Of a stretch of 64,000 nt of DNA, positions 998-52,999 are shown one piece after another. Where the stretch lies: the NCBI GenBank assembly GCA_965112735.1, contig OZ218951.1, forward strand, positions 3,286,001 to 3,350,000, read 5' to 3'. How positions within the stretch are numbered: position 1 is the stretch's first letter; every line of letters starts with the position of its first letter. The notes under the pieces are model-generated. The model was not told where the DNA came from and did no database searches. It saw only the letters and a program-made list of their open reading frames with translations. The position numbers and the translations under genes are program-made. Origin of the DNA: Phaeosaccion multiseriatum. Taxonomy: Eukaryota; Protista; Ochrophyta, other classes.

Positions 998-3855
998 CAG
1001 TGACAGGGCATATCTCGACGTAAAGAGGGCTTCGTTTCAGTCAAGGGGGGGGGGGGGGGGCAGTCGAGGCCATCATTCGCAGCGAACCACGCACAGCAAT
1101 GCGGACGCGGGGAATGCCTCTTCAGTCGTCAGCTTACAGGGATGAGCAAGGGGGGTATGATGGTGCCACTCAGAAGGACAACGCAAGGAGTAAATGATGG
1201 AGGAAGCAGGAGCAGCTTGCCCAGCTACGACTCACCAAACGCCATCCGGACCGACCGGAAGGCAGCACGCTTTGCCGGCGCGGGTAATTACCTGAGCGTG
1301 GCCCCATACACAGCGCAGGAGCAGAGAGTGGAAGCAGGAGGGGCAGGTTCACAGAGGAAGAGACAGTCCAAGGGGGGTGCCAAGAAAAGGGGTAGGTGTG
1401 TGCATTGTACTGACTGCAAGCTCATTACGAAGTGGTCCTACGTCCCCATCCTCAGCACGCCAGAGTCACAGTCATCAAAAGAAAGAAGACACGGCTTTGG
1501 CTCCACTACTGTTGTTCCACTAGCTACGATACTGGCTGGGCGGCCCAGCGACTCGCCACCCTCTTCCTCCACTCGTGCACGCACCTTCAGCCATACACAG
1601 GCATAGGCCGCTTCGCATTTGGCGATGGAGTCCCCGTACAGCTCAGCACCCTGAGAGGGGCACAGGCCGGTGGGGAAAGCAGCACGCCTCAGCAAAGGCG
1701 GCGGGGCAGGCCAGAGAAGAGGGTGTGGCGAGCGACGGACTTACCAAACAGGAAGTGGCTTCAGTGCAAGCAGCACTCGACGTGCCCTCGAATTTCACTT
1801 CCTGCGGATGGGGCGATGCAAACGATATAGAGAGAGGACAGGCATGAGTTACATGCTTAGCAAGGTTAGTCAGGCTTCCCAGAGAGCGACTAACGAAGGG
1901 GCTCGTGCAATCACCCTTGTCCTTGTAGGACTCACTTCGCATCCGTGCTCTACGCTGCACGTCACGGGGCAGTTCTGCGCACAGGGGTTCACGTCGCATG
2001 AAGAAGGAGGGGCCGTCGTCGCCGATCCAGAGCAAACAGCAGGCCGGCCAGGATACAGCAGGGAGACCAACCAGGCGTGCGAGCAGAGAGGCGGCGAGAG
2101 AGAGAGGCGTGAGACAGCGAACAGTAGCGATCTCCGCAACAGAACCCCCACGATGAATGGAGAGGACGTACGTCATGGAAGATGGAGACGCAGAAAGCAC
2201 AGAAGGGGACAAGCAAAAAGAGCAGAAGACAGAGACATGCAGGCTGCGACCGTGCCCGCTGTACCCCTCCTGGCTGTAGCTTCCCTCTCCTCCCACCACC
2301 ACATCCTCGCCATCGGCAGCGGGTGCCCCCCCCCCCCCTCCCCCCAAGCCCCCGGTCTCTCGCAGAGCAACTGACTGTAATCCAACAACCACACCAAGCC
2401 TTGGAGTTATCATAGGAGCCTGCCGCAAGGCTTGCTCTTCGAGGTCGGCAACCAAATGGAGGCGGCAGGAGAGTCAAGTGCAGCAGGAGACAGGCCTTCT
2501 GGCTGCGCTCGCTCACCTGGAAGGTCACCCCCTGGCGGTACCAGTCCATAACGGAGAATGGTTTCAGTATTCGTCCGTCCGAACACAGCAGCAGGAGCCG
2601 AGGGGCAGGCAGGAAGCCATATGGTGCCACATGGACGCGAGGAAGACAAAGTTGTGCAGTCCAGCGGGAGACGGCACGGTGAGAGAGGAGGAGCCGCAGC
2701 CGTTGGAACGCGGGAGGCAAGCAGATCAGCCAGCCACAGGCAGAGAGGAGAAGCGAGCCCGGCACGAAGGAAAGGGTCGCGTGACATGCCGAACACGCAA
2801 GGAGGGGCAGCACCACAAGTCAAGGAGGGGAAGGGCGGTAGGGGGGGGGAAGGGTGAGTCTCGCGTCTTGTGATGTACAGTGAGGCTTCGAAGCAAGTAT
2901 AGCCCAAAGAAGATGTAGCTTACACTCCGTCGGGAATAACTACCTCACCAACAAGACGCAGCAGAAACACACAGCAATCCAAGTCACGCATGGTTCTTGA
3001 CTGCGAGCGGCAACAAGGCGACCATGAAGTTGGAGAGACACGCACCCTGCAAGACCTGCCGTCACGCGCGGGGATGTCGGGAGAACCCGAAGGTGTGTCT
3101 GTATCAACATCACACACGATGGGAACGGTCGAGTCCGGCTGGCATTCACAAGTCAAAGGGTCGTCCGTGGCCTGCCCGCCTGACACCACGCCCCCCACAG
3201 CAGTGCAGGCCGTGCTGAAGACTGCTCATCATGCCGAAGGGAGGGAGGAGGGGAGGGACGAGAGCACCAGAGGCATGCATAAATAGAGAGAGGTCAGCAG
3301 CCAGCGACAGTAATAGCTACGAGGAACCACGAGTAAGTGGAGCAGCGGGAGAGCAAAGCAGGCAGGCAGGAAGAGAGAGGAGGCACAGGAGTGGGAGAGA
3401 GAGCACGTTCGGAGTGGGCTCGTCAGAAGGCAGGGCAAGTCACCACAGCCCCCGCAGTGCCCGATGGTTCGGGCCCGGCAGGAGCCTCCTCGTCCCCCTC
3501 TCCCCCTTCCCCTCTGAACTCACATGGCTGGGCATCGAGCGAAGGGGTAATAGTTGTAGCAGCAATATAGTAGTAATAGCAGTAGTAGTAGTAGTAGCAG
3601 TATAGTAGTAGGAGCAGGAGGACGAGGAGGAGTAGAGGAATAGCAGCAGCAGAGGTAGGAGGAGAAGTAGTAGCTAGTAGTAAATAGCAGAGCAGCAGTA
3701 GCACCAGAGGAAGCAGTAGTAGTAGTGGTGATAGTAGAAGTGGTCGGGAAGTCAGAGTAGTAGTATTAGTAGAACTAGTAGTAGTAGTAGTAGTAGTAAT
3801 AGTAATTGTAGTAGCAGCAGCAGTAGTAGTAGTAGTAGTAGTAGTAGTAGTTGTA

Positions 3856-3909
<54 letters not shown>

Positions 3910-13258: not shown

Positions 13259-14295
13259 CAGTAGTAGTAGTAGCAGTAGCAGCAGCAGTAGAGTAGTAGC
13301 AGAGTAGTAGCTAGGGGGGAGGGGGAGCAGGATTAGCAGCAACAGGGGTGAGTGAACTCGTTCCTCTCACGCAGCCCACAGGCCAGCCCAGGCTACATCG
13401 TCGCGCATCCCGGCTGCCAAGACCCTCCCTCCACACACACTCGCTTGAGGATCTTCCTCACTCACCTCTGGAGGAGACGACACGCGAAGTAATTAGCGCG
13501 GGGGGGTGGTTGTGGGGGAGGCGTGTGAGGCGGGCAGACTGCACTCCCAGCAAGCGAGCATGGCCGAGGCAGACAGAGTGAAGCAGCGATTGGCACCAGC
13601 CACCCCCCGCGGGGCGGGGAGAGGAACAAAAGTCGGAATGAAACCCCCTGCCTCGACTCACCGACACATGTGATTCCGTCCCACCTAAACCCGTCGTTAC
13701 AGGTGCAAGTGTAGGAGGCTACCGGGGCCTCCGTAAGTTGCTCGCACTGGGCGTTGACGTCGCAGTTGTTGGGGCTGTCGGTGCAGTGGCCTTCAGCTGG
13801 GGACAGTAGACACGCAAGCAGCAAGCAAGAGAGAGGCAACACACGCACACGCAAGCAACAAGCAAGAGAGAGGGGAAGTGGGGAAGTTGCCATTCGCTGC
13901 TTAAGCTGATGGCTGGGAGGGGAAAGCTCTCAACCAACAACGGAGACGAGACGTGACGTGGACACGTCCAGGCAGGAGCCTTCGAGGAGGAGGAGGAGGA
14001 GGAGGAGGAGGAGGAGGAGGAGGAGGAGGAGGAGGAGGAAGAGGAGAAGGGGAAGAAGCAGGAGAAAAGGAGAAAAAGGTGGGGGGGAGGGGGGGGAGGA
14101 GGTGGTGGTGGTGGTGCACGAGGAGGAGGAGAAGAAGAAGAAGAAGAAGAAGAAGAAGAAGAAGAAGAAGAAGAAGAAGAAGAAGAAGAAGAAGAAGAAG
14201 AAGAAGAAGAAGAAGAAGAAGAAGAAGAAGAAGAAGAAGAAGAAGAAGAAGAAGAAGAAGAAGAAGAAGAAGAAGAAGAAGAAGAAGAAGAAGAA

Positions 14296-14327
<32 letters not shown>

Positions 14328-17300
14328 AGAGGAATACACGTGTTGCTATCGACACTCTCCCTGGCTAGCTACGTCCTACGTCCACCTGCTCCCTCTCGAT
14401 CTTCATCCTCCCTTGCACGGCAGACCAGACATAGCTACGAGCCGCCCAGACAAGAAGAAGGCACACAACCGTGGACGGGCAACACACCCCTCCCTCCAGT
14501 CACGCAAAAGGGCCATGCATCGCTTCGCCTCACAGCCCAGGGTAGGACACACAGCACACTAGTTCACAAAGCAAATCAATCTCTTTCTTCCTTGACTTAC
14601 CAGTGACAGGACATATCTCGATGCCAAGAGGGCTTCGTATCAGTCAAGGGGGGGGGGAGGGGGCAGTCGAGGCCATCATTATTCGCAGCGAACCACGCAC
14701 AGCAATGCGGACGCGGGGAAAGCCTCTTCAGTCGTCAGCTTACAGGGATGAGCAAGGGGGGTATGATGGTGCCACTCAGAAGGACAACACAAGGAGTAAA
14801 TGATGGAGGAAGCAGGAGCAGCTTGCCCAGCTACGACTCACCAAACGCCATCCGGAGCGACCGGAAGGCAGCACGCTTTGTCGGCGCGGGTGGATACCTG
14901 AGTGTGGCCCCATACACAGCGCAGGAGCAGAGAGTGGAAGCAGGAGGGGCAGGTTCACAGAGGAAGAGACAGTCCAAGGGGGGTGCCAAGAACAAACCCC
15001 TTGGTTGTACTGTACTGCAAGCAAGCTCATTACGAAGTGGCCCTACGTCCTCATCCTCAGCACGCCAGAGTCACTGTCATCAAAAGAAAGAAGGCACCGC
15101 TTTGGCTGCACTACTGTTGCTCCACTAGCTACGATACTGGCTGGGCGGCCCAGCGACTCGCCACCCTCTTCCTCCACTCGTGCACGCACCTTCAGCCTTT
15201 TACAGGCATAGGCCGTCTCGCATTTGGCGGTGGAGTCCCCGTACAGCTCAGCACTCTGAGAGGGGCACAGGCCGGTCGGGAAAGCAGCACGCCTCAGCCA
15301 AAGGCGGCGGGGCAGGCCAGAGAAGAGGGTGTGGCGAACGACGGACTTACCACACAGGAATAGCCTCCAGTGCAAGCAGCACTCGACGTGTCATATAGAC
15401 GCGCGTCCTGCCATCCATGCGTGTTTCGAAACAGTTGAATGGGGCGGGGCAACGAAGGGCGGGCGGACAGGCAGACAGGCTCGAGTTTAGTTCAAGGCTG
15501 GCCGGGTAGGCGTTGCACCATACTCCAAACTGCCTTTCCAATCGCCTTCTGGTCAGACTCATGACTGAGAACGAAGGGGCACACGCACGCACGCCTCAGC
15601 CAAAGGCGGCGGGGCAGGCCAGAGAAGAGGGTGTGGCGAACGACGGACTTACCGAACAGGATGCCCCTCCAGTGCAAGCAGCACTCGACGTGCCCTTGAA
15701 TATCGCTTCCTGCGGATGGGGTGATGCAAACGATATAGAGAAAGAACAGGCATGAGCTACACGCTTAGCAAGGTTAGTCAGGCCTCCAGAGAGCGACTAA
15801 CGAAGGGGCTCGTGCAGTCACCCTTGTCCTTGTAGGACTCACAGAGCATCCCTGCCCTACGCTGCACGTCACTGGGCAGTTCTGCGCACAGGGGTTCACG
15901 TCGCATGAAGAAGGAGGGGCCGTCGTCGCCGGTCCAGAGCAAACAGCAGGCCGGCCAGGATACGGCAGGGAGACCAACCAGGCGTGCGAGCAGAGAGGCG
16001 GCGAGAGAGAGGCGTAAGACAGCGAACAGTAGCGATCTCCACAACAGAACCCCCACGCCGCTGTACCGCTCCTGGCTGTAGCTACCCTCTCCTATCACCA
16101 CCACATCCTCTCCATCGGCAGCGGGTGCCCCCCACCCCCCCCTTAACCCCGGTCTCTCGCTAGAGGACCTGACTGTAGCCCAACAACCACACCAAGCCTT
16201 GGAGTTATCAAAGGAGCATGCCGCAAGGCTTGCTCTTCGAGGTCGGCAACCAAATGGAGGCGGCAGGAGAGTCAAGTGCAGCAGGAGACAGGCCTTCTGC
16301 CTGCGCTCGCTCACCTTGAAGGTCACCCCCTGGCGGTACCAGTCCATAACGGAGAATGGTTTCAGTGTTCGTCCGTTCGCACACAGCAGCAGGAGCCGAG
16401 GGGCAGGCAGCCCAGGAAGCCATATGGTGCCATGTGGACGCGAGGAAGACAAAGTTGTGCTGTCCAGCGGGAGACGGCACGGTGAGGGAGGAGGAGCCGC
16501 AGCCGTTGGGACGCGGGAGGCAAGGAGATCAGCCAGCCACAGACAGAGAGGAGAAGCGAGCCCGGCACGAAGGGAAGGGTCGCGTGACATGCCGAACACG
16601 CAAGGAGGGGCAGCGACACAAGTCAAGGAGGGGAAGGGCGGTAGGGGGGGGGTGAGTCTCGTGTCTTGTGACGTACGGTGAGGCTTCGAAGCAAGGATCA
16701 CCCAAATAAACGTTGGGAAGAACCACCGAATCAACAAGCCGCAGCAGAAACACACAGCAATCCAAGTCACACATGGTTCTTGACTGCGAGCGGTAACAAG
16801 GCGACCATGAAGCTGGAGAGACACGCACCTTGCAAGACCTGCCGTCACGCGCGGGGATGTTGGGCGGACCCGAAGGTGGGTACGGATCAACATCACACAC
16901 GATGGGAACGGTCGAGTCCGGCTGGCATTCACAAGTCAAAGGGTCGTCCCTGGCCGGCCCGCCTGACACCTCGCCCCCCACAGCAGCGCAGGCCATGTAA
17001 AAATACACTCCTTTGTCAGTCATGCAACAGGGAGGGGGTAGCGGGTGGGAGAGCACCGGAAGGAGAAAAAAGAGAAGGAGGTCAGAGCGAGCAAGAAGAG
17101 AATTTCGAGAAACGCGAAGAGCAACTTGAGCAGGGGGAGGGGTAAGCAGGCTGGAGGAGGAGAAGGAGAAGAAGAAGAAGAAGAAGAAGAAGAAGAAGAA
17201 GAAGAAGAAGAAGAAGAAGAAGAAGAAGAAGAAGAAGAAGAAGAAGAAGAAGAAGAAGAAGAAGAAGAGCACGAGGAGGAGGAGGAGGAGGAGGAGGAGG

Positions 17301-18558
17301 ACGAGGAGGAGGACGAGGAGGAGGACGAGGGGAGGAGGAGGAAGAGGGGAGGAGGAGGACGAGGAGAAGAAGGAGGAGGAGGAGGAGGAGGAGGAGGAGG
17401 AGGAGGAGGAGGAGGAGGAGGAGGAGGAGGAGGAGGAGGAGGAGGAGGACGAGGAGGAGGAGGAGGACGAGGAGAGGCAGGAAACAAGCGACTGAAGACC
17501 GGGCTCAGGGCGATATTTGTTAGTAGCGGAATCTTCATCTTCATGCTATTAAAAGGATACCGTCATTATCCGGGCTGCTGACGACTTGCCTGTCAGAGCC
17601 AGGGCACAGAAGCAGAGGCAGCGAGGGTGGAGGGCGGAGGGCATCGACATGTTAGACGGAGGCATCGCTCGCATGCACTAGAGGTGAAGCGCTATCTGCA
17701 CTTTGTGTAGGCAGCAGGAAGGGTGGTTCAGTAAAGTGAGGAGAAAAGGGTCCAGCCAGCCAATACGGGTACACTTACTTGCCGGGACCTTGACACAGGC
17801 GAGCAGGCAGAAGAGGAGTGCGCAGTTGTCCCAAGGGCCGTCATCCGCGGAGCCATCCGAGCGAACGCACATGCGGTCGAACAGGGCAGGAGGCGAACAG
17901 CCCGTGTGAGGAGAGAATCAACACCATCACAGCAGCCATCCAGACATGAGAGCAGGCAAGAAGTGGGTGGGAGTGAAAGTAGGAGCAGGCGTCAGGGTCA
18001 AGTGGTGACCGCGAGATATCAAAGCAGAGAGCCCTGTCGCAGCAGGAGGAGGAGGAGGAGGAGAAGGGGGATGGCAGTGGAAGGGAGCGGGAGGAAAGGC
18101 CGGCAGGGGGCTAAGGAGGAGGAGGGCAGGGGCAATAAAGCAGCACAATGATGAATCGCAAGCAACAGGGCGCTGGAGTGGCCCTCACTCAAGCTGCGCA
18201 GCTCCTACCAAAGTGAGAGAGGACTGCCTCAGTGAAAGGAATGGGTGAGAAGGTTCTTCGAGAGCCAATCCGCTCGCACAAACAACGCGGAGGGGAATTG
18301 AGTACTGCGGTGCTCAACACGCAGCAACGCTGATGTCTATTCGCTCGCTTGGGTTGAGGAAGAAGCTTCGTGTCAAGCAGACCTGCTACTAGGCTAACCT
18401 GTTGCGCCTCGGAGCCCAAGAAACTGCTCTCCAACAAAGAGCGCCAACAGCGCCAGCAGCAGCAGCAGCCACCCCCGCCAAGAAGATGACTTGATGGTGT
18501 TCAAGAAGGGGCCGGAGAGGTGGCAGATAGAACGAAGGGAGTGGCACTGGGCGGGCAT
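998..18558 (-). CDS. Large modular secreted/cell-surface Cys-rich protein: signal peptide + [Cys-rich solenoid-like domain + EGF] x >=4, built from micro/mini-exons; 3' end lies beyond the left edge
   Basis: Manually spliced with GT-AG sites. Leftmost unit: 4435-4301 (EGF, phase 1-1), 4102-4101, 3527-3524, 3221-3046, 2531-2517, 2399-2376, 1974-1936, 1801-1745, 1650-1585, 1291-1236, 1029-998 = 606 nt, open frame: AEGHCTDSPNNCDVNAQCEQLTEAPVASYTCTCNDGFRWDGITCAEPFFSTACTAVGGVVSGGQATDDPLTCECQPDSTVPIVCDVDTDTPSGSPDIPARDGRSCR-GVTFQ-AWCGCWIT-NCPVTCSVEHGCE-EVKFEGTSSAACTEATSCL-GAELYGDSIAKCEAAYACVWLK-VITRAGKACCLPVGPDGV-CPLYVEICPVT. Exon length differences between modules are multiples of 3 (176/179/182, 66/63, 56/62) and Cys are invariant. 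The 24-nt exon acceptor and the single-gene linkage are inferred. Confidence 0.72.
3569..3938. repeat. (GTA)n/(GCA)n degenerate microsatellite; equivalents at ~8814-9070 and ~12942-13310
   Basis: Direct inspection. It lies between the candidate 2-nt and 4-nt microexons, and its frame is not conserved between units. Confidence 0.93.
4301..4435 (-). CDS. EGF-like domain exon, copy 3 (135 nt, phase 1-1)
   Basis: Same six-Cys EGF pattern and splice sites. Bases 1-25 match the intron end preceding these exons, implying a fourth copy just off-window. Confidence 0.85.
6111..7073 (-). repeat. 302-bp tandem exon+intron duplication carrying four 57-nt cassette exons
   Basis: Exons 7073-7017, 6771-6715, 6469-6413, 6167-6111, each cag|...|gtaagt and spaced exactly 302 bp apart. 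Confidence 0.92.
9426..9560 (-). CDS. EGF-like domain exon, copy 2 (135 nt, phase 1-1)
   Basis: Same six-Cys EGF pattern and splice sites as 13662-13796. Confidence 0.85.
13662..13796 (-). CDS. EGF-like domain exon, copy 1 (135 nt, phase 1-1)
   Basis: ccccag|CTGAAGGCCACTGC...TGTGTCG|gtgagt; six-Cys EGF pattern CTDSPNNCDVNAQC...YTCTCNDGFRWDGITC. Confidence 0.85.
15351..15709 (-). repeat. 302-bp exon+intron duplication carrying two 57-nt cassette exons
   Basis: Exons 15709-15653 (EAIFKGTSSAACTGGASCS) and 15407-15351 (DARLYDTSSAACTGGYSCV), 302 bp apart. Confidence 0.9.
18399..18558 (-). CDS. Probable first exon (signal peptide/hydrophobic leader) of the modular Cys-rich gene
   Basis: ATG 18558, MPAQCHSLRSICHLSGPFLNTIKSSSWRGWLLLLLALLALFVGEQFLGLRGAT, then ACAG|gttagc donor in phase 1, matching the phase-1 start of exon 17010-16829 (GVYFYMACAAVGG...). 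Confidence 0.55.
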
Positions 18559-19570
18559 GGCCACCAGGCAGAAACAGCAGGGCAAGAAAGAAGGGAGGCA
18601 GAGCGAGGCAGGGATTCAATAAGTCAGTAGGCTAGCCAGGCAGAGAAGAACCTTCAGGAGCTCAAGAAGGCCCGGCCGGAGGAGTGCGAGCGACTAGTGA
18701 GCAATTTCCAGATGTTGCCATGGTTGACGGCTGCCCCCCTCGCTCGACTCGCTCCGCCCCCCCGAAGTCAAGCAATGCTCCTCTCGCCGCGCCCCCCCCC
18801 CCTCCCCAGCAGCCACCGGCCTAGTCACTAGGCACGCACCTCCCACCACCCCCCTCGGTCTCTTTCTGGCTCCGTGCTAATCAACGCACCTGACACATCC
18901 TGCTGGCAGTAATAGGCTGATCCGCGTCTGTTGCTTGACTTGGCCCCCGGCCGCTCTCGGCCGGCCGGTAGCTACGAGCGACGCCGCCGCCGGTACCAGA
19001 TCCAACAACAACGCTGGCGGAGGGGTAGCTAAGGGAGCGAGCAAGCAGTCATGGTGCGAGTATAACGATGGTGAGAGCGTGGCTAGATAGGTCAGGTCAA
19101 CGCCAGAGGGAAATTTGCTTGTAATCCCCTTCAAGAAGGAAGCGGGGCGGAGAGTAGCTACATCACGCAAAAGTTGGAGGAGGGATGACCGACGCAGGCA
19201 GCTCTTTCCTTTCTTTCAGCAGAAAAAAGGGAACTGGGGGGAGGGGGGGGGGGGGCGGGGCTTTTCATGACAGTGCGATCACAGTGCCATCTCCTCTCCC
19301 CCCGATTTTCGATTGCTTGTGCTTTTTGCTTGCTCGCTCACTCACCACAGCTTGTGGGAACAAGAGAGATGTCGGGGTGTATACCCAAATTTCCTAATTG
19401 AGAGATTGTCAAAAATGTTCCCAGGGAAGAAGGGGTGAGAATCCGAAGATGATCGAAGAACGCGTGCCAATTCAGTTTCCGTTTCCGCTCAGTTTCGAAT
19501 TTCATGACATATTCTCGGTTGCTCGTTCACCCACACGGAGCAGAGCTGAAGCACGTAGCAGGTAGCCACC

Positions 19571-22500
19571 ATGGCTACCACTCGAGCTGCTGCAGCTGCA
19601 GCAGCGGCCTCCCTCAGTGTCGGGAGCCGTGTCACCGTTAACGCGAAACCTGGAAAGATCAAGGTGAGAGAAGAGAGGAAGGGGGGGGGGTTTGAAGGAG
19701 GGGTGACTTTTGTTTGGCTTTGTACGCAGTCGTCTCTCCCCGCCGATATAGAGGGGATGGCAGAGCTCCTCTTTGAGTAGCACTCCTGACCTAAGTGCAT
19801 CCTCCTCTGCTCTCAAGGGCATTTATCTCGCCTCCCTGCCTCAACCCCTGTCTCTGCTTGTTTGATTTGTCAATCGATCAGTTCATTGGCACCACCGAGT
19901 TCGCTCAGGGCGAGTGGATTGGGGTTGAGCTTGATCAGCCAGACGGAAAGAATGACGGTTCGGTCCAGGACAAACGGTGAGTGGAAGGAAGGGTCAAAGG
20001 AGGAGGAGACGAGAGTATGAATGCGAATCAGTCTTCGTTCAATTGGCAATCTCTCCAAAGGGGCAAAGGAAGGGGTACGCTACAGAAGCCTTGGCGGGTG
20101 GATCCTAGTGAGTATTGCTGCTGCCCGCATCGCAGCACTGGGTGGGATGCTTCTTTTGTTCTTCGTGCTATTACTATTACCCCCCCGTATCTCCTTCCCT
20201 CTTTCCCCCCTCTCTCCCTCTGTGCCCCGCGCTATTCACTGTGAGCCCTCACTTCGCCTACATTATGGTCGTTCCCCCCCCCTCCCTCCCCGGGCCAGGT
20301 ACTTTGAATGCAAAGAGGCTCATGGGCTCTTTGTCAAGAGGGAGCAGGTGAAGCCCGAGAGGACATCTCGTCTCCCCACCTCACGCATCACGCGAAGCTC
20401 TAGCAGGGCGGCGAACTCCGCGGGCACGGCAGCAGGCACGGCCTCAATCACTTCGTCTGTAGCGGGATCTCCGTCTCCTGTACCATCTCCCCGCTCAACG
20501 GCCTCCTCCTCTTCGTTTGCGACGACGACATCTGCATCGCAACCTTCTTCTACGGCTGCGGATTCGGCGGTGGCCCCCAGTGCTGCTACTGCTACTGCTA
20601 CTGCTACTGCTACTGCTGCTGCTGCTCCTTCCGCGAAAGGCCCCTCCGCCGCGGTGTCTCGCCTTGCCGCCCTCCGAGAAAAGAACAAGGCCCTGAAAGA
20701 CTCGTACACAAGCTCCAGGCGGAACAGTTCAGGAGGCGCCTCTCCCAGTGGCTCTCCCGGTGGGGAAGGGAAAGGGGGCGGAGGAGGAGGAGAAGGAGGA
20801 GGAGGAGGAGGAGGAGGGGAAGGCAGCAGGGAAGGGGAAGGGGAGGTGGGAGGAGCCAATGTCTCTGACGCTGGTGTCGGTACCGCCACTCCTCCTTCCA
20901 AGAGGTCGACTCGCGTGACTGAGGCGTTGTCACCGCCCAGAGGCTCGTCTCCCTCCTCCTCCTCCGGGAAGAAGGTGGCGGCAGGGACAGCGACAGCCGC
21001 CGCGTCTGAAGCCGTCGGGGGTGCTGTAGGCGGCAAGAGACCAGAGAGGCGAGCCGCTACCGCCACCGCCGCCGCCGCGGGGAGTGTCACTGCTTCTGCT
21101 GCGAGTCGTCGGGGTGCTGCTGCTGTTGGCTCGTCTGGAGGAGACTCTCGCACAGCAGCAGCAACAGCAGCAGCAGCTGCTGCTGCTGCCGCCGCCGCCG
21201 CCGAGGAGAGAGAGAAGAAGCTCCAGGAGCAGCTCTCTGCCGCCGAGGAGCAAGTCAAGGACCTGTCTCGCCAACTCAGCACCAAGGCGCAGGCCATGGA
21301 GGAGCTCGCGGTGCAGGCCCAAGAGGCCAACAGCTCCAGAGAGGCGGCGGAGGAACGGATGAGTGCGGCGGAGGCCAGCCTCGCGGAGATGGAGCAAATG
21401 GCCTCCGGGAGCGCCGCTGAGACTCCAGCCAAGGGCAAGGGGGGAGGGGAAGGGGAAGGGGGAGAAGGGGGGCAGCAGGCTCCTGCTACTCCTCAAACGC
21501 CGGCGAAGAGTAGCGCCTCTTCTTCTTCTTCGCCCTCCTCCTCCGCCACTCCGGTGTCCGTTTCGAGGAGTCCGGCAGGTAACGTTGTAGGGCACCATTA
21601 CCACCACCACCACCATCACCACCACCACCACCATCACCTCACCCCACCCCGCCGTCCTCCCTCCTCTTGTCCTCCCATCTCCCCAAGCAGCCGCACCCCC
21701 CGAGATGATGGTGGAGCTCGCAGAACTGCGCATCAAGGCCCGACAAGTCGCTGAGCTGAGCGTCCGTTGCGAGCAGATGGACGCACTGCAGCTGGAGCTT
21801 CAGGACAGTCAAAGGAGCCTTCGGAAGGTGGAGGCAGAGCTCGGGCAGCTGAAAAGTAGGCAGGAGGCGGCAGCGGTGGATGAAAAGACCAAGTTGGGGC
21901 AAATCGCCAAGGAGAAGGCGCACGCAGCGTCGGTGAGTGAGTGAATGTGTGTGTGTGAGTGAGAGTGTGAGTGAGTGGGTGAGTGTGAGTGAGTGGGTGA
22001 GTGTGAGTGAGTGGGTGAGTGAGTGGGTGAGTGAGTGGGTGAGTAAGTCAGGGAGTTTGAAGCGTGTTCTCTCCCCCCCCCCTCCTCAACACGCCCTGTG
22101 ACTTGCACCATCCCATCCTATCCCCCCTGCCTCCCTCACTCACGCACTCCCTCACTCCCTCCCTCCCTCACTCACACACTCCCTCCCTCACCCACTCACT
22201 CACTCACGCACTCACGCACTCACTCACTCCATCCCTCCCTCCTTCCCCTCCCTCTCTCCCTCCCTTCCCCCCTCCCTCCCCACCCCCACCCCCACCCCCA
22301 CGCCCAGGCCGAGAGGAAGACCAAGGAGCTTGAGGAGCAATTGGCGGAGCTCAACGATGCGGTGGAGGCCCTCACACTCGACAAGGAGCAGCTGGTGAGT
22401 GATGAGTCAGGGTTGGCCCTGACATGCCCATGTGCCTGTTGGGCCCGTTTGTCTGCCATCCACTACATCCTCTACACACCCGCTACCGCACATACCCTCC

Positions 22501-22981
22501 CCACTCCTCGCTCTCACCTCCACCCCCCCCCACCTTGCCCTCTCCCTCCCCTTCCCTCCCCTCCCCTCGCCCCGCCTCGCCTCGTCCTCTCCCCCTCCCC
22601 CCTCCCAGGTGATGGAGAAGGAAGAGCTGCAGGAGGAGAAGGACGAGCTCTCTATCGAGCTTGAGTCTGCGCAGCTTGACCTTGAACACGCACAGCTCAC
22701 TCAGCAGGAGAACAGCAGCAACATCCCGGCGGCATCCTCCGCAGCGCTGGACAGGGAGGGAGGAGGAGGACAGGGGGGGCCAGAGTTGAAGCAGCTCGTG
22801 CATCAGAACGGGCAGCTCAAGGAGGTGAGTGAGTGAGTGAGTGGACATGATTAAGGGATGGGGATGGGACGGGATGAGATGGGAGGGGAGGGGAGGGGAG
22901 AGGATGAAGGGTAGTCCATACCGCTGTGAGAGCGACACGATGCGACCACAGCGCTCTCGTGCGGTGCCTACTACTACTACG

Positions 22982-23044
<63 letters not shown>

Positions 23045-26000
23045 GCTATTACTACTACTACTACTACTACTACCTACTACTGTCACCACCACCACTACTA
23101 CTACTCCTACTACTACTGCTGCTACTACACTCCTTCTACTCTACTGCTACTCCTACTACTACAACTACTACAACAACAACTACTACTACTACTGCTACTA
23201 CCACTACTACTACTACAACTACTACTACAACTACTACTACTACTACTACTACTACTGCTACTGCTACTACTACTACTACTACTACTATTACTACTGCTGC
23301 TACTACACTCCTTCTACTCTACTGCTACTACTACTACTACTACTGCTACTGCTACTCCTGCTGCTACTACTACTACTCTACTACTACTACCACTACTACT
23401 ACTTTTCTGCTGCTGCTTGTATGGGGGTGGGGAAGGGGGGTTGAAAAGCTCCGTGGGTGTTTTTTTGTTCTACTGCTCGCCACAGTGGACGTAGTCATGT
23501 GTCACGTGGGTTTAGTTTTCAACTCCATCCCCCCCATCTACTGCCATCCATCCACCCATCTGCCCCCCCCCCCCCAACCCCCCGCATCCACTGCCATCTA
23601 TCCATCCATGGACTCCCACCCCACCCCCCCCCCCATCCACTGCCATCCATCCATCCACCTGCCCCCCGCCTTCCCCACAGGCTCTGAAGCGGTTACACGA
23701 CATGTCCACAGCTGATAAAGCCTCCCTCTCGAAGCGAGTGAGGGAGGTGGAGAGGGAGGCGAGTGCTGCTGTGGAGCTGCGCACCGAGCGAGATGCTCTG
23801 GGGAAGTGGAAGGAAGCGGCTTTGATACAGCTCGAAGGCCTCAAAGAACAGGTAGGGAACAGGGGAGGAGAGAGAGGGAGGGAGGGTGAGAGGGGAGGGA
23901 GGGAGCGGAAGGAGGAAGGGAGGGAGGGGCGGGAGGGAGGGGGGAGAAGAGAGAGAGGGGGGAGGGAGGGGAGGGAGGGAGGGAGGAAGGAGGGGAGGGA
24001 GGGAGGGAGGGAGAGGGAGGGCAGGTCAGCGCTTTCAGTTTTCAGTTTACATGGCCTTATCAATATTTGGGTGATCGAAGCTTTCGAAGCTTCTGTGCTT
24101 GTGATCTTTACTAAACTGAAACTATAACTACTACTCCGGTTCTGTTTCTGCCACCACCCTTCCGTTTGCTGCCATCGCCTCCTTCTTTCGTGCAGGTGGA
24201 CGAGGGGGAAGCGTTTCGGGAAATGGTGGAGGAGCTCACAGACAAAAACCTTGAAATGGGAGAGAAGGTCAGTCAATCAGTCAATCAATCAGTCAGTCAC
24301 AGTCAGTCAGTGAGTCCGTGAGTAAGTCGGTTCAGTCAGTCAGCCAGTGAGTCAGTCAGTTTCTTTTCCAGTCGGCTCTCCCTTCTCTTCTCTTGGACCC
24401 ACCTCCCTCCCTCCCTCCCTTTCTCCCTCCGTCCTCACTTCCTGCTTGATCTAGGTGGACGAGTTACAGACTTCTGTAACGGAACTTGAGTCCTCTCTAG
24501 AACTGTCAGAGGAGCTGGAACAGACGCAGGGGGAGGAGCTCAGGACGATGAACAGGGAGATGGATAGTAAGGACATGGAGATTAGGAGGCATGCATTGGA
24601 GAAGGAGCAGTTGCAGAGGAAGGTGGAGGACGGACAGCGCACAGTGGAGAGGTTCCGACATGTCGCAGAGCTGCTCAAGAAGGAGAGAGACGCCTTGGCA
24701 GAACAGGTGAGTGAGGATGGGGGTGAATATGAAAATGGCATTAAGGGCATGGAAGGAGGGAGGGTGTGAGGGTATAAGGGCATGAGCGAGGGAGGGGAGA
24801 GGAGCAAGTAACCACCAAGAATTAGTCACAAGAGGGTGGTGGTGAGGGGCGCAACAAGCGCAAGTGAATCCCTACCCGGGCGATGATGGGGTGAATGACC
24901 GGAGACTGGTCTAATCGGGGGTGATGAGCCATTTCTCTGTCTCTTGACGAAACGTCGCGATTCAGCGAGACGTCGTTCGTTCGGGGGCAGGGCGGTGGTA
25001 GAAGCCTACCTATACGATAGTAAATGCCGATGCCGATGGTACTGGATGTTGCGGTAAGGTGGTACTTTTATAGATCGACTCAGACCGCCTGCCTCCCACG
25101 GCCCTCCCACACCTTTCTATAATGTCTCCCTCGTTGCCTTACACACCAATCCACCTCATTTAGGTCTCACTCGGAGGAGAGGAGCTCGAGTCCATCCGGA
25201 AGCGCCACCAAACGGCTCTGTCGCGCAAGCAGCGGGGCTCTGTTGGTAGTGTGGCTGGTGGGGCCACAGGCGGTGTCGGCAGTCGGTCCATGCTCTCCTG
25301 CCAGCTGCAGACAATCAAGACGCTAGAGAACGCCGTGCGAGCAGAGCGGCTTGGCTTGCTCCTGCCGGTGGCGGTGAAGGAGACGGAGGAGAGAGCCCTT
25401 GCCGCTGACCTCGTCCTCTGTCGGGCGGCTGCCAAGGCGGGGGTGATGCTGGAGATGCTGCTGCCGCAGATCCACTCCTTTGTCGTCAGCAGCCATGGCA
25501 AGGGACAACAGAAGAGCAGGGAAGGAGGAGAGGGCTCGTCGTCGGAGGATCCATTGGGGGAGGAGCAACAGGATGGCGAGGAGGAGGAGGAGGAGGAGGG
25601 GAGAGAGGAGGCCGTCCGGCGAAGCAGGCTGGAGGCAAAGGTATGCACTATGCTGGTGGATTTGCAGGGTAGGGCGAGGAAGCTTATTGCACTGACTGTC
25701 GGAGAGAAGGAGGATGTGGGGTCGTCTGCACCCTCCTCGGACTCTGCAGATGGTAGCCGCCACAGTCAAGGAGGCGGACTGTATCACCAACTGCTGTCGC
25801 CCGAGAAGGTGGAAGAGATCTCCTTGGAGCTTTCCTCTGGCTTCCAGGCAGCGGAGGGCAGTATGGACGCCATGCTTAGTGTGCTGGAGGACGAGGGGGG
25901 CTGCTTGCCACCTGCGAGGGCCGGCGAAGCAGTGGCAGGACTGGAGGCGGCCTTGTCGGCACTGGTAGAGAGGCAAGCGATCTTCTTGGAGGGATCCGAG

Positions 26001-28238
26001 GAGGCCGAGGCAGAGAGTGAGGAGCACGAGGGAGACAGAGTCACAGGAGGAGGAGCAGAGTCTGGAGCCCTACTGCTGCAAGGGCAAGGCAACTCTTTGA
26101 CGGACGCCTCTTGCTTGTTGGACGGCGTGCGGGCGAATGCGCTCGCTGCGGCCGTAGCTGGCTTGGTGGTGGGACGAGAGGAGGGTAGCGAGGAGGAGGA
26201 GAAGGAGGGGCAGGGGGAGGGGGGCATGAAGGCCCTCCTACGAGACGTGGACAGGCTCCAGCGTCGCTTGTGGGGCGGCGAGAGCAGCAGCGGTAGCAGT
26301 GTTGATCTAACTGCAGGTGTAACGGCAGGTGTAACGGCAGGTGCAACGGCAGGTGCAACGGGAGGCATGCCTGAGATGCGCACGGCGGCCACCCTACGCG
26401 CCGCTCGAGAAGTCTGCGAGAGACTCCGGGAGGTGCGAGAGGGGCTCCATGGCTGGCTTGGCGACTCACAGGCACAGAGCGAGGGGGGAGGGGGGGGAGG
26501 ACAAGTAGGAGTCAAGGAGGATGGTGGAGGCAACCCTCTGTCACCCACCACCATTGGAGGGCTTCGGTCGATACTCCAGAGCCTGTACGTGGCGAGTCCT
26601 GTCGGGCTGCTGGGCACAGGGTGTGATGCGGTGCTGCCCAGCAACTTGTGGCACATCATGCAGACCGGCGCTCTGCCCTCTTCCGTTGTGGGGAGAGGAG
26701 GAGCAGGAGGAGGAGGGGGCGGAGGCCTGGGTGGGAGGACGGGCAAAGGCAGCAGGATCAGCATGGGGGACATCTTCGGCGGCGAGGAGGAGGAGGATGA
26801 TGAGGAGGAGGAGGGAGGAGACTCGGCGGCTGCTGCTGCGCGCAAGGAGGCCAAGGGCGCGAGTACACCTTCTTTTGTGCCTCTCTTTCTCGCACGAGCT
26901 GAGAAGAGCCAGGAGAGGCTACAGGCGGGGGCCTCTCTTGAGCCGCAGCTGCAAGCAACGCTTGTGCAGAAGGCGGACTTGGCAAAGACCTTGTCCCAAA
27001 GAGAGAAGGAACTCTCCTCTGCCAAGGCCTCTGCAGAGCGGCTGGAGGGCCTGGTGGAGCAGTACCGGGGCAGTGGCAAGGAGGCAGAGGAGGCGAGAGG
27101 GCGGTTACAGAGCGTAACCGAAGAGGCGCGAATATATAAGGAAGCCATGGAGGCGGAGGAGGAGAAGGTGAAGATGTACGAGAAGCGGGTGCGCGATCTT
27201 CTCAGCAGCAGCACCAGCAGCGGCAGCGGCGGGGGCGGGGGAGGCGCTTCAAGCCCCATGGGTGGCGGCTCTCCGTCGTCTCGACTCCTCCGGAAGAAGA
27301 GCGTGTCCCTCGGTGTAGGGGAGTCTCCCCGCTTCACCCTCTCGGCAGCAGATGCCGCCGACCAAGGGGCTTCTGCTGCTGGTGGGGCGTTATCCGGCGT
27401 TGAGGCGGGCGGGGAAAGCACCGGCCTCCTCAGGCGCATGTCCAGCTCGTCCTCTTCCTTTGCAAGCACTGCTGGCACTGCTTCTGGAACTACTGTATTA
27501 CCAACTGCTACTGTTGGAGCGTCTCCTGCCGAGGCTCGTGCGATGATGCAGGCGTTGGTGCACTCGAGAGGGGAGTGTGCGAGGTGGAGGGCCGCAGCCA
27601 CACGGACCATGTTGGGTAGACTGCAGCCCCTTGCCGTGGCCAGAGACAGCCATCCGTTCACATACGGGAGCGCAGGTGGCCGAGAGCAACAGCAGCACAA
27701 GGAGGAGAAGCAGGGGAAGCAGGGGAAGCAGGAGGAGGGAGAGGAGGAGGAGGGGGAGGAGACGAGAGGCCCAGCAGAGAGCACGGCCGAGTGGTCGTCG
27801 TCAGCTGTTGAGACCGGAGGAGGAAGTGCAGCGCCTGTAGCGGTAGCGGCTTGCCTGCAGGAGCTCCAGAGACTGTCGCAGAGGATTCACGCCGAGCGAG
27901 CAAGACCCAAGGTTGTTAATTTGTGTGCAGGGCGAGAGACCAGCGCCAGAATGGCGGGCATGAGGGCGAGGCTGAGGAGGAGGAGGAGGGAGGAAGACGG
28001 AGGCGGAGGCGGGGAGGGAAGTGGAGGAGCAGCAAAGACAGACGTCTCTACTGTTTCCGCTGACTCTGCTGACTCTGTTGACGGCTCTGTTGCTGGGGCT
28101 GCTGGGCTCGGCGGCAAGGGCGGCGTCGTGAGTGGGGCGAGGGAGGAGTGGCGGGCGCAGCAAGTGCAGGCCCTGAGGCTCATGCGGGATTTCGATGCCG
28201 TTCGGCACAGGGCCTCGGCAGCGATGCGGTATCAATGA
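19571..28238 (+). CDS. DCTN1: Dynactin subunit 1 (p150-glued), multi-exon
   Basis: Spliced N-terminal CAP-Gly domain VGSRVTV...GKIK|[32 protein letters not shown]|[12 protein letters not shown] with the GKNDG motif. It is followed by a basic Ser-rich linker and coiled-coil exons with p150-type words ([42 protein letters not shown]). The final ~3 kb exon stops at 28238. Confidence 0.9.
22968..23403. repeat. (CTA)n microsatellite in a dynactin intron
   Basis: Direct inspection; inside intron 22825-23680. Confidence 0.95.
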
Positions 28239-28979
28239 AGGCCATCCCCATCCCATCGACTGCCATCCACAGCCATCCGAAGCCATCCACAGCCATCCAC
28301 AGCCATCCCATCCACTGCCATCCAGGGCTTCAGTGAAGGACACTGTGGGCACGCTCGATTTCTCCTTCATTCATTCATAAATGCGATTGCTACTTTACAC
28401 ACACACACACCCCTCTCGCGCACTCGTCGTTCGTCACTCCGCGAGTGTTGCTCCCCACCTTTCTCCTCAGCTCCATGATTTGTACTCCCCGCTGGTGCCT
28501 CCTCGTCCGCCGACCGTGGGATGCCATCCATCTGCTCAACCGTGGGATGCATCTCCATCATGCATGCACGACTACTACTACCAAGCGAACTTGAAGGAAA
28601 CACGTCAAGCACACTTGCTACTACTACCAAGCGTGGGATGCCATCCACCTGCCCAACGGTATGATCTTCGTGCCTCATACGTACGTGAAGTGCGCGTTAC
28701 GAAAGTGAAGTATGCTTGCGCATGACCGCTCTCCTTGACACACACGCACACACACACCTCCCTCACTCACTCACTCACTCACTCACTCACTCACTCACTC
28801 ACTTCAATACACTCCCTCTACACGGGCGGCGGGTAGGGTTGCCCAGCCCACGCTGTGCTCCCCTATTCCCCCCTCTACTCCACTCCCACGCTCCTGTCTC
28901 TCCTCCCTCCTCCACTCCCCTCCTCCTCCCTCCCCCACTCCCCCCTTCCTCCCCCCTCCTCCTCCCCCCTCCGCTCATA

Positions 28980-44301: not shown

Positions 44302-52999
<8,698 letters not shown>

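Follow-up and report, generated by a model that had tools for sequence, protein, structure and literature searches.

This work focuses on a modular gene of Phaeosaccion multiseriatum, an ochrophyte (brown-alga-related) microalga. The window, by which we mean the whole stretch of 64,000 nucleotides (nt) that was analyzed, covers positions 3286001-3350000 of contig 2 in an assembly of 67 Mb and 22 contigs, and everything said here about variation comes from this one genome. The gene is on the minus strand at window positions 998-18558, with most of it inside the window, and it probably encodes a secreted, cysteine-rich modular protein. Its short repeat exons resemble one another closely except at a few codons, which differ far more than the introns beside them. 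We favor, with moderate confidence, an explanation in which recombination homogenizes the scaffold of the protein and selection diversifies the residues at fixed positions, which would together make up a putative ligand-binding surface.

Bases 1-17000 of the window are a tandem array of units 4.2-5.2 kb long that are 91-96% alike, and the array extends below the window start by one further unit, a fifth module. The exons of a full module come in the order EGF, four-Cys (134 or 137 nt), 39 nt, one to four cassettes of 57 nt, 63 or 66 nt, and then two linker exons of 56 or 62 nt and 32 nt. The EGF exon is 135 nt long and runs from phase 1 to phase 1, the four-Cys exon goes from phase 1 to phase 0, the 39-, 57- and 63/66-nt exons are phase 0 throughout, and the 32-nt exon brings the frame back to phase 1. 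Each module contributes 462 + 57n nt of coding sequence, so the frame is preserved. A single reading frame fits all 31 repeat exons found in the window, and every one of them has AG/GT borders. We considered whether micro-exons separate the EGF exon from the exon that follows, but they are unneeded because a codon is split between the two, with its first base at the end of the EGF exon and the other two at the start of the 134-nt exon. The features are as follows, with the variable residues around the second Cys given for the short exons.

18399..18558, minus strand: exon 1, with its ATG at 18558, 160 nt open, a GT donor after 18399, ending in phase 1
14601..16962, minus strand: module 1, without an EGF exon and beginning at the four-Cys exon (134-nt exon 16829-16962, 56-nt exon 14842-14897, 32-nt exon 14601-14632)
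10387..13796, minus strand: module 2 (EGF exon 13662-13796, 137-nt exon 12438-12574, 56-nt exon 10628-10683, 32-nt exon 10387-10418)
5382..9560, minus strand: module 3, with four 57-nt cassettes (EGF exon 9426-9560, 137-nt exon 8311-8447, 62-nt exon 5619-5680, 32-nt exon 5382-5413)
998..4435, minus strand: module 4 (EGF exon 4301-4435, 134-nt exon 3046-3179, 56-nt exon 1236-1291, 32-nt exon 998-1029)
15843..15881, minus strand: 39-nt exon of module 1, GQ then S
11332..11370, minus strand: 39-nt exon of module 2, SG then S
7207..7245, minus strand: 39-nt exon of module 3, HR then S
1936..1974, minus strand: 39-nt exon of module 4, EH then E
15653..15709, minus strand: 57-nt cassette of module 1, resident type, GA then S
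15351..15407, minus strand: 57-nt cassette of module 1, of the type carried on a 302-bp unit, GY then V
11140..11196, minus strand: 57-nt cassette of module 2, resident type, DH then E
7017..7073, minus strand: 57-nt cassette of module 3, resident type, DH then L
6715..6771, minus strand: 57-nt cassette of module 3, 302-bp unit, ET then S
6413..6469, minus strand: 57-nt cassette of module 3, 302-bp unit, GY then S
6111..6167, minus strand: 57-nt cassette of module 3, last 302-bp unit, GY then S
1745..1801, minus strand: 57-nt cassette of module 4, resident type, AT then L
15190..15255, minus strand: 66-nt exon of module 1, AY then KR
10979..11044, minus strand: 66-nt exon of module 2, VD then GN
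5954..6016, minus strand: 63-nt exon of module 3, AY then RW
1585..1650, minus strand: 66-nt exon of module 4, AY then VW

Exon 1 joins the first 134-nt exon in frame, and its hydrophobic run suggests a leader that would act as a signal peptide. Each of the short exons holds one repeat of 13-22 residues, a loop closed by a C-x5-C pair (two Cys six residues apart), and when the exons are aligned on the second Cys they have conserved scaffold residues in common. Taken together, the putative leader, the cysteine pairs and the EGF modules suggest that the protein is secreted or sits at the surface. Exon lengths differ by 3, 6 or 9 nt, all multiples of three, the exception being a 58-nt copy in module 5; intron indels, by contrast, have lengths such as 1, 2, 4, 5 and 11. 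The in-frame length changes of module 3 (the 63-nt and 62-nt exons) leave the reading frame intact. The EGF exon is the only one that matches a Pfam family. The copy at 4301-4435 (translated from 4302-4436) matches EGF_3 (PF12947) over profile positions 1-36 of 36 with a score of 44.9 bits (E = 1.4e-11), above the cut-off of 28.5. The 57-nt exon is below the minimum length for a Pfam search.

The genome has 21 of the 57-nt cassettes, all at one of two loci: contig 2 has nine, and contig 13 has twelve, downstream of the lectin and EGF exons of the gene's only paralog. All 21 are open, with AG/GT borders, phase 0 and a length of exactly 57 nt, and both Cys are intact in 20 of them. The sole loss is in the contig 13 cassette at 799944-800000, whose second Cys has become Gly (TGT to GGT). 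A genome-wide pattern search returned 20 cassettes, all at the two loci in the orientation of the gene with none on the opposite strand, and it found no spare, reversed or inactivated repeat exons in the introns. The C-type lectin exon of the paralog is at 805416-805934 of contig 13 on the minus strand, about 1 kb upstream of the EGF exon on the same strand, and it matches Lectin_C (Pfam PF00059) at 805425-805814 with 31.9 bits against a cut-off of 22.6. For the contig 2 gene no Lectin_C match was found on chromosome 2 near the window. Open reading frames further upstream of the lectin exon look by eye like furin-type Cys repeats, and Pfam gave no match for them. The variable sites of module 2, again judged by eye, are closest to those of the chromosome 13 copy.

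The original prediction, made from the letters of the window, was that whole codons change around the second Cys of each repeat and the adjacent introns and EGF exon stay nearly identical. The residue strings it listed are all present on the minus strand at the positions it gave. Its list of 57-nt exon ends is correct, but the number of these exons in the window is eight and not seven, since one variant occurs twice. The contrast with the surroundings is real. In the 39-, 57- and 63/66-nt exons the hypervariable codons lie around the second Cys of the C-x5-C pair, two ahead of it and one behind, and their diversity is 0.30-0.56 versus 0.02-0.08 for the flanking introns and 0.03-0.07 for the remaining codons. 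The variable codons are thus 5 to 15 times more diverse than introns, at equivalent positions in three exon classes. Only 3 of 135 bases vary among the window's three EGF exons.

It is important to realize that the positions compared (-3, -2 and +1 from the second Cys) were taken from the 57-nt exon in advance and then used blind for the 39- and 66-nt exons. Among the five chromosome 2 copies of the 39-nt exon, all nine preselected bases vary versus 22 of 270 intron columns (Fisher p = 8e-10), and diversity is 0.556 versus 0.037. For the 66-nt exon it is 0.30 versus 0.021 in introns (p = 9e-4). Within the 57-nt units that carry the 245-nt intron (n = 14), the mean pairwise difference is 0.374 for seven variable codons, 0.077 for the intron and 0.050 for the twelve scaffold codons. 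Diversity per codon in the 57-nt exon peaks at codon 3 (0.57), codon 16 (0.66) and codon 19 (0.47), and the Ser and Cys codons between codons 16 and 19 are essentially fixed. With invariant codons amid variable ones, the pattern tracks codons rather than a DNA stretch. In column-shuffling scans the 9-nt windows of greatest variability fall on the same patches (P = 0.002 for the 57-nt units; for the 39-nt and 63/66-nt classes, 0 of 5000 shuffles equaled the observed value), and minimum-mutation counts per window agree.

The variability goes beyond what was first noticed. Codons 1, 3 and more weakly 5 of the 57-nt exon are hypervariable as well, the first codons of the 66-nt exon vary too, and the start of the repeat alternates, with even positions conserved and odd ones variable. 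The alternation of conserved and variable residues is the only evidence, and an indirect one, that the repeats may stack as a solenoid. Common residues at the variable positions are His, Tyr, Trp, Asp and Asn, which would suit a binding surface, perhaps one for glycans. The 134/137-nt exon differs from its chromosome 13 copy by 0.239, and the aligned introns differ by 0.112.

We chose tree-free measures (pairwise diversity, minimum mutations per window and the four-gamete test) with recombination in mind, and tree-based counting was not relied on alone. The site models were fitted with custom code (M0, M1a and M2a, F3x4 frequencies, fixed relative branch lengths) to the 21 cassettes of 57 nt on two alternative trees. 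Under M0 the ratio of nonsynonymous to synonymous change, omega, is 2.2-2.5. The comparison of site models, run here as M2a against M1a, is strongly positive. The likelihood-ratio test (LRT) statistic is 45.6 and 48.8 on the two trees, with omega of about 7 on about a third of the codons and posterior probabilities above 0.95 at codons 1, 3, 15, 16 and 19. A small set of twelve neutral data sets was simulated under M1a with three independent genealogies for the thirds of the exon, and the maximum LRT in it was 5.0. Simple counting gives a ratio of nonsynonymous to synonymous differences per site (pN/pS) of 1.2 over all the 57-nt cassettes and 2.35 over ten units of contig 13. It gives 0.44-0.52 for the EGF exon, which is therefore under purifying selection. 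Nei-Gojobori counting inside the variable codons was discarded since all three codon positions differ there and the synonymous estimate saturates.

The inference of diversifying selection first made from this sequence stands in part. It holds at the fixed codons, where exons diverge more than introns, M2a is strongly preferred and the neutral simulations fail to reproduce the signal. Taken over whole exons, dN/dS is about 1 and not significant for the 39- and 66-nt exons. One face of a solenoid, and recognition of pathogens, prey or mates, are the more conjectural parts of that inference. With the intron as the neutral yardstick, selection for amino-acid change at the variable codons is supported.

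Recombination is pervasive at this locus. The Hudson-Kaplan minimum number of recombination events (Rm) is 14 over a 315-column alignment, variable-codon distance is uncorrelated with intron distance (rho 0.10), and identical variable motifs turn up on differing backgrounds. The cassettes at 6715-6771 and 6111-6167 have upstream introns that differ at 3 of 241 bases versus 8 of 21 bases in their variable codons. The four-Cys exon (3046-3179, 8311-8447, 12438-12574, 16829-16962) exists in two sharply distinct versions between Cys 2 and Cys 3, one common to modules 2 and 3 and the other to modules 1, 4 and 5 and the contig 13 copy, so the modules are mosaics. The 245-nt cassette intron (for example window 6168-6412) is 89-93% identical between the chromosomes versus 72-83% for the other introns of the two genes, which suggests recent transfer of cassettes between the loci. 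This identity has no apparent explanation in a structured RNA, since Rfam reports no family for window 1-19000 and the cassette intron folds no better than shuffled copies (z = +1.0).

The paralog contains a block of three consecutive cassettes (798729-800906 of contig 13) that has been duplicated further along the array with its variable residues identical or nearly so. Over the three duplicate pairs 36 of 735 intron bases differ, half of them private, versus 2 of 63 bases in the variable codons. This bears directly on the idea that the variability comes from a local mutation hot spot, in which damage, error-prone repair or small templated insertions near splice sites do the work. In its favor, the patches are close to the ends of exons and vary at every codon position. 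If a hot spot were to account for the diversity as a whole, however, about 15 differences would be expected where 2 are observed (P = 4e-5). The patch also contains invariant Ser and Cys codons, and there are no donor copies elsewhere in the genome. The variable sites therefore mutate no faster than their surroundings, and the residues were retained after duplication. We regard a hot spot as extremely improbable and close to refuted. Retention of the residues fits positions that set specificity better than it fits constant rapid turnover.

Another argument is that the variable codons are simply old and unconstrained. Conversion would erase divergence everywhere else and its tracts would halt at mismatched patches, with no selection for diversity at all. 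Such a passive patchwork is in keeping with the heavy recombination (the Rm above), the lack of relation between intron and variable-codon distances, the pN/pS near 1 within the variable codons, the rate of change in recent duplicates, which is about that of introns, and one intron patch that is fairly variable too. However, the introns are equally unconstrained, yet no window of theirs is as variable: 9 nt require at least 16 mutations in an exon patch and at most 11, partly indels, in the intron. The patches sit at equivalent codons of three exon classes and respect codon borders, none of the 21 cassettes has a stop codon, and M2a is preferred over M1a far beyond what the neutral simulations with recombination produce. 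We consider the passive patchwork unlikely.

Several results weigh against a selected binding surface on a secreted protein. The case for selection rests on the intron yardstick and on custom site-model code. The 39- and 66-nt exons have a nonsignificant pN/pS of 0.95-1.4, and within the variable codons pS is 0.3-0.65, which is saturated, so dN/dS is uninformative there. The variable sites change no faster in recent duplicates, so selection is episodic or conserving and not a continuing race. Exon use and order throughout the gene are read from genomic DNA. On the fold, Pfam finds no family for the 66-nt and 134/137-nt exons even at E up to 10, and for the non-EGF exons a PDB sequence search gives one chance match (E = 1.1) and the ESM Atlas nothing usable. 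Scans of protein representatives and metagenomes found no relatives outside this genome. A profile of the four 134/137-nt exons searched against 1.84 billion protein representatives had two matches only, both to unrelated low-complexity repeat proteins that we set aside. The cassette core, searched for as an exact pattern in metagenome contigs, had zero matches, and the 12 loci (40-56% identity) returned by a metagenome scan with the EGF exon alignment were rejected as ordinary EGF genes without cassette-like repeats. Finally, the counterpart of the 66-nt exon in module 5, outside the window (window -3052 to -2995), is 58 nt and breaks the frame. Read in phase 0 it has seven codons before a stop. 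This may be where the protein ends, or else the last module is decaying.

The frame-breaking copy in module 5 could be taken to mean that the array is non-coding, either a satellite or a pseudogene in decay, and that its apparent exons are meaningless. The Cys lost from one cassette of the paralog, the lack of a homologous protein among 1.84 billion representatives and a pooled exon divergence between the two loci that equals intron divergence would all agree with this. But divergence is sharply uneven by codon, with the Cys and scaffold codons invariant. The frame and splice sites are intact in the 31 repeat exons of the window, exon indels come in multiples of three and the EGF exon is under purifying selection. 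That the array is non-coding is in our opinion highly improbable.

We return to the explanation we favor, in which two processes would act on the same repeats. Modules and cassettes would exchange sequence by unequal crossing-over and gene conversion, which would hold the scaffold codons and introns 90-99% alike and also alter the number of cassettes. Selection would maintain, and at times drive, differences in amino acid at a fixed set of five or six positions in each repeat, namely the three around the second Cys (two before it, one after) plus alternate residues at the repeat start. Distinct residues would arise in episodes at these positions and be preserved thereafter, which is what one would expect of residues that set binding specificity. 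The variable positions most likely face outward and would jointly form a ligand-binding surface, and the protein would then serve as an extracellular recognition or adhesion molecule.

A further possibility, compatible with this explanation, is that the 57-nt exons are skipped or chosen as alternatives and give many isoforms. They are of equal length, phase 0 and multiples of three with canonical splice sites, and there are 1 to 4 of them per module here and 12 at the paralog. Alternative splicing of one-repeat exons has been reported for brown-alga ROCO genes (PMC11378527). The cassette intron, however, folds in an ordinary way (z = +1.0) and has no Rfam family. In Dscam of insects competing RNA pairings enforce exon choice, and the folding and Rfam results therefore give no sign of pairings of that kind here. 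We think it quite unlikely that the cassettes are alternatives. We think it very unlikely that the arrays are combinatorial, with interchangeable one-repeat exons brought together by alternative splicing or somatic rearrangement. If they were, single cells or clones would bear different versions of a secreted or surface receptor, and the gene would be an algal counterpart of Dscam or of the variable lymphocyte receptors of lampreys, with a cysteine-loop repeat not described before as its building unit.

The closest known parallel is the candidate receptors of brown algae that contain leucine-rich repeats (LRR-ROCO) or tetratricopeptide repeats (NB-ARC-TPR). These are exon-shuffled, have one repeat per exon and are positively selected at fixed positions of the repeat (Zambounis et al. 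2012, PMC3341825; PMC11378527). They belong to the same algal phylum as this gene and share with it the one repeat per exon, the constant exon length and the symmetric phase; in both, shuffling alters copy number and a few fixed positions per repeat are positively selected. There are differences too. The repeat here is a cysteine-pair loop and not an LRR or TPR, and the LxxLxLxxN pattern is absent from it, with the C-x5-C pair instead. The brown-alga proteins are cytosolic, whereas this one is predicted to be secreted and has EGF modules, with a lectin in its paralog. Theirs is a large clustered family and here there are two loci only. The introns of this gene are without reversed or inactivated spare cassettes. 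No ROC-COR GTPase or NB-ARC exon was noticed while annotating 998-18558, although a dedicated family search was not made. By analogy the gene works like the brown-alga receptors, but it is not one of them, since its repeat is not an LRR or TPR, no signaling domain was noticed in it and its introns hold no spare cassettes.

Other systems share parts of the pattern. The repeats of TAL effectors are 33-35 residues long, bacterial, intron-free, helical and DNA-binding, and they carry repeat-variable diresidues. There too near-identical DNA repeats differ mainly at an adjacent pair of codons and recombination reshuffles the pairs, but the resemblance is one of pattern only. The abalone egg receptor VERL has repeats of about 150 residues of the ZP-N type, among which selection has acted on entire units at one end. 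In common with this gene, gamete-recognition repeat proteins, VERL included, have extracellular tandem repeats that concerted evolution homogenizes and selection diversifies in part; unlike VERL, the selected sites here are fixed codons within every repeat. The beetle antifreeze protein is a disulfide-braced beta-helix of 12-residue repeats with C-x5-C and a regular ice-binding face. It shares with our repeat the short unit rich in Thr, Ser, Ala, Gly and Cys and the two Cys six residues apart. However, the period here is 19 and not 12, the residues predicted to face outward are irregular, and there is no PDB sequence match.

How microalgae recognize mates, bacteria, parasites and prey is poorly understood. 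This gene carries the footprint of what may be a surface shaped by selection, with the variable codons pinpointed, on a type of repeat without known relatives. It would extend the design of one repeat per exon, shuffled and diversified, beyond intracellular LRR and TPR proteins into an extracellular setting with EGF and lectin. We believe it is also a natural test bed for the interplay of gene conversion and selection in repeat proteins because the introns are a built-in neutral yardstick.

The large introns of every module are filled with long GAA/GGA and GTA trinucleotide microsatellites whose lengths vary by module (window 100-720, 3540-3930, 4620-5100, 8810-9070, 9730-10110, 12950-13310, 13980-14330 and 17160-17460). 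Two other coding regions lie elsewhere in the window. A divergent neighboring gene on the plus strand (19570-28240) begins about 1 kb upstream of the start codon of the modular gene. It has a CAP-Gly exon at 19882-19974 (Pfam CAP_GLY, 48.2 bits), and long open reading frames further downstream in it resemble dynactin p150 by eye only. An open frame at 51018-52262, also on the plus strand, encodes ankyrin repeats (Pfam Ank_2, E = 1.6e-11).

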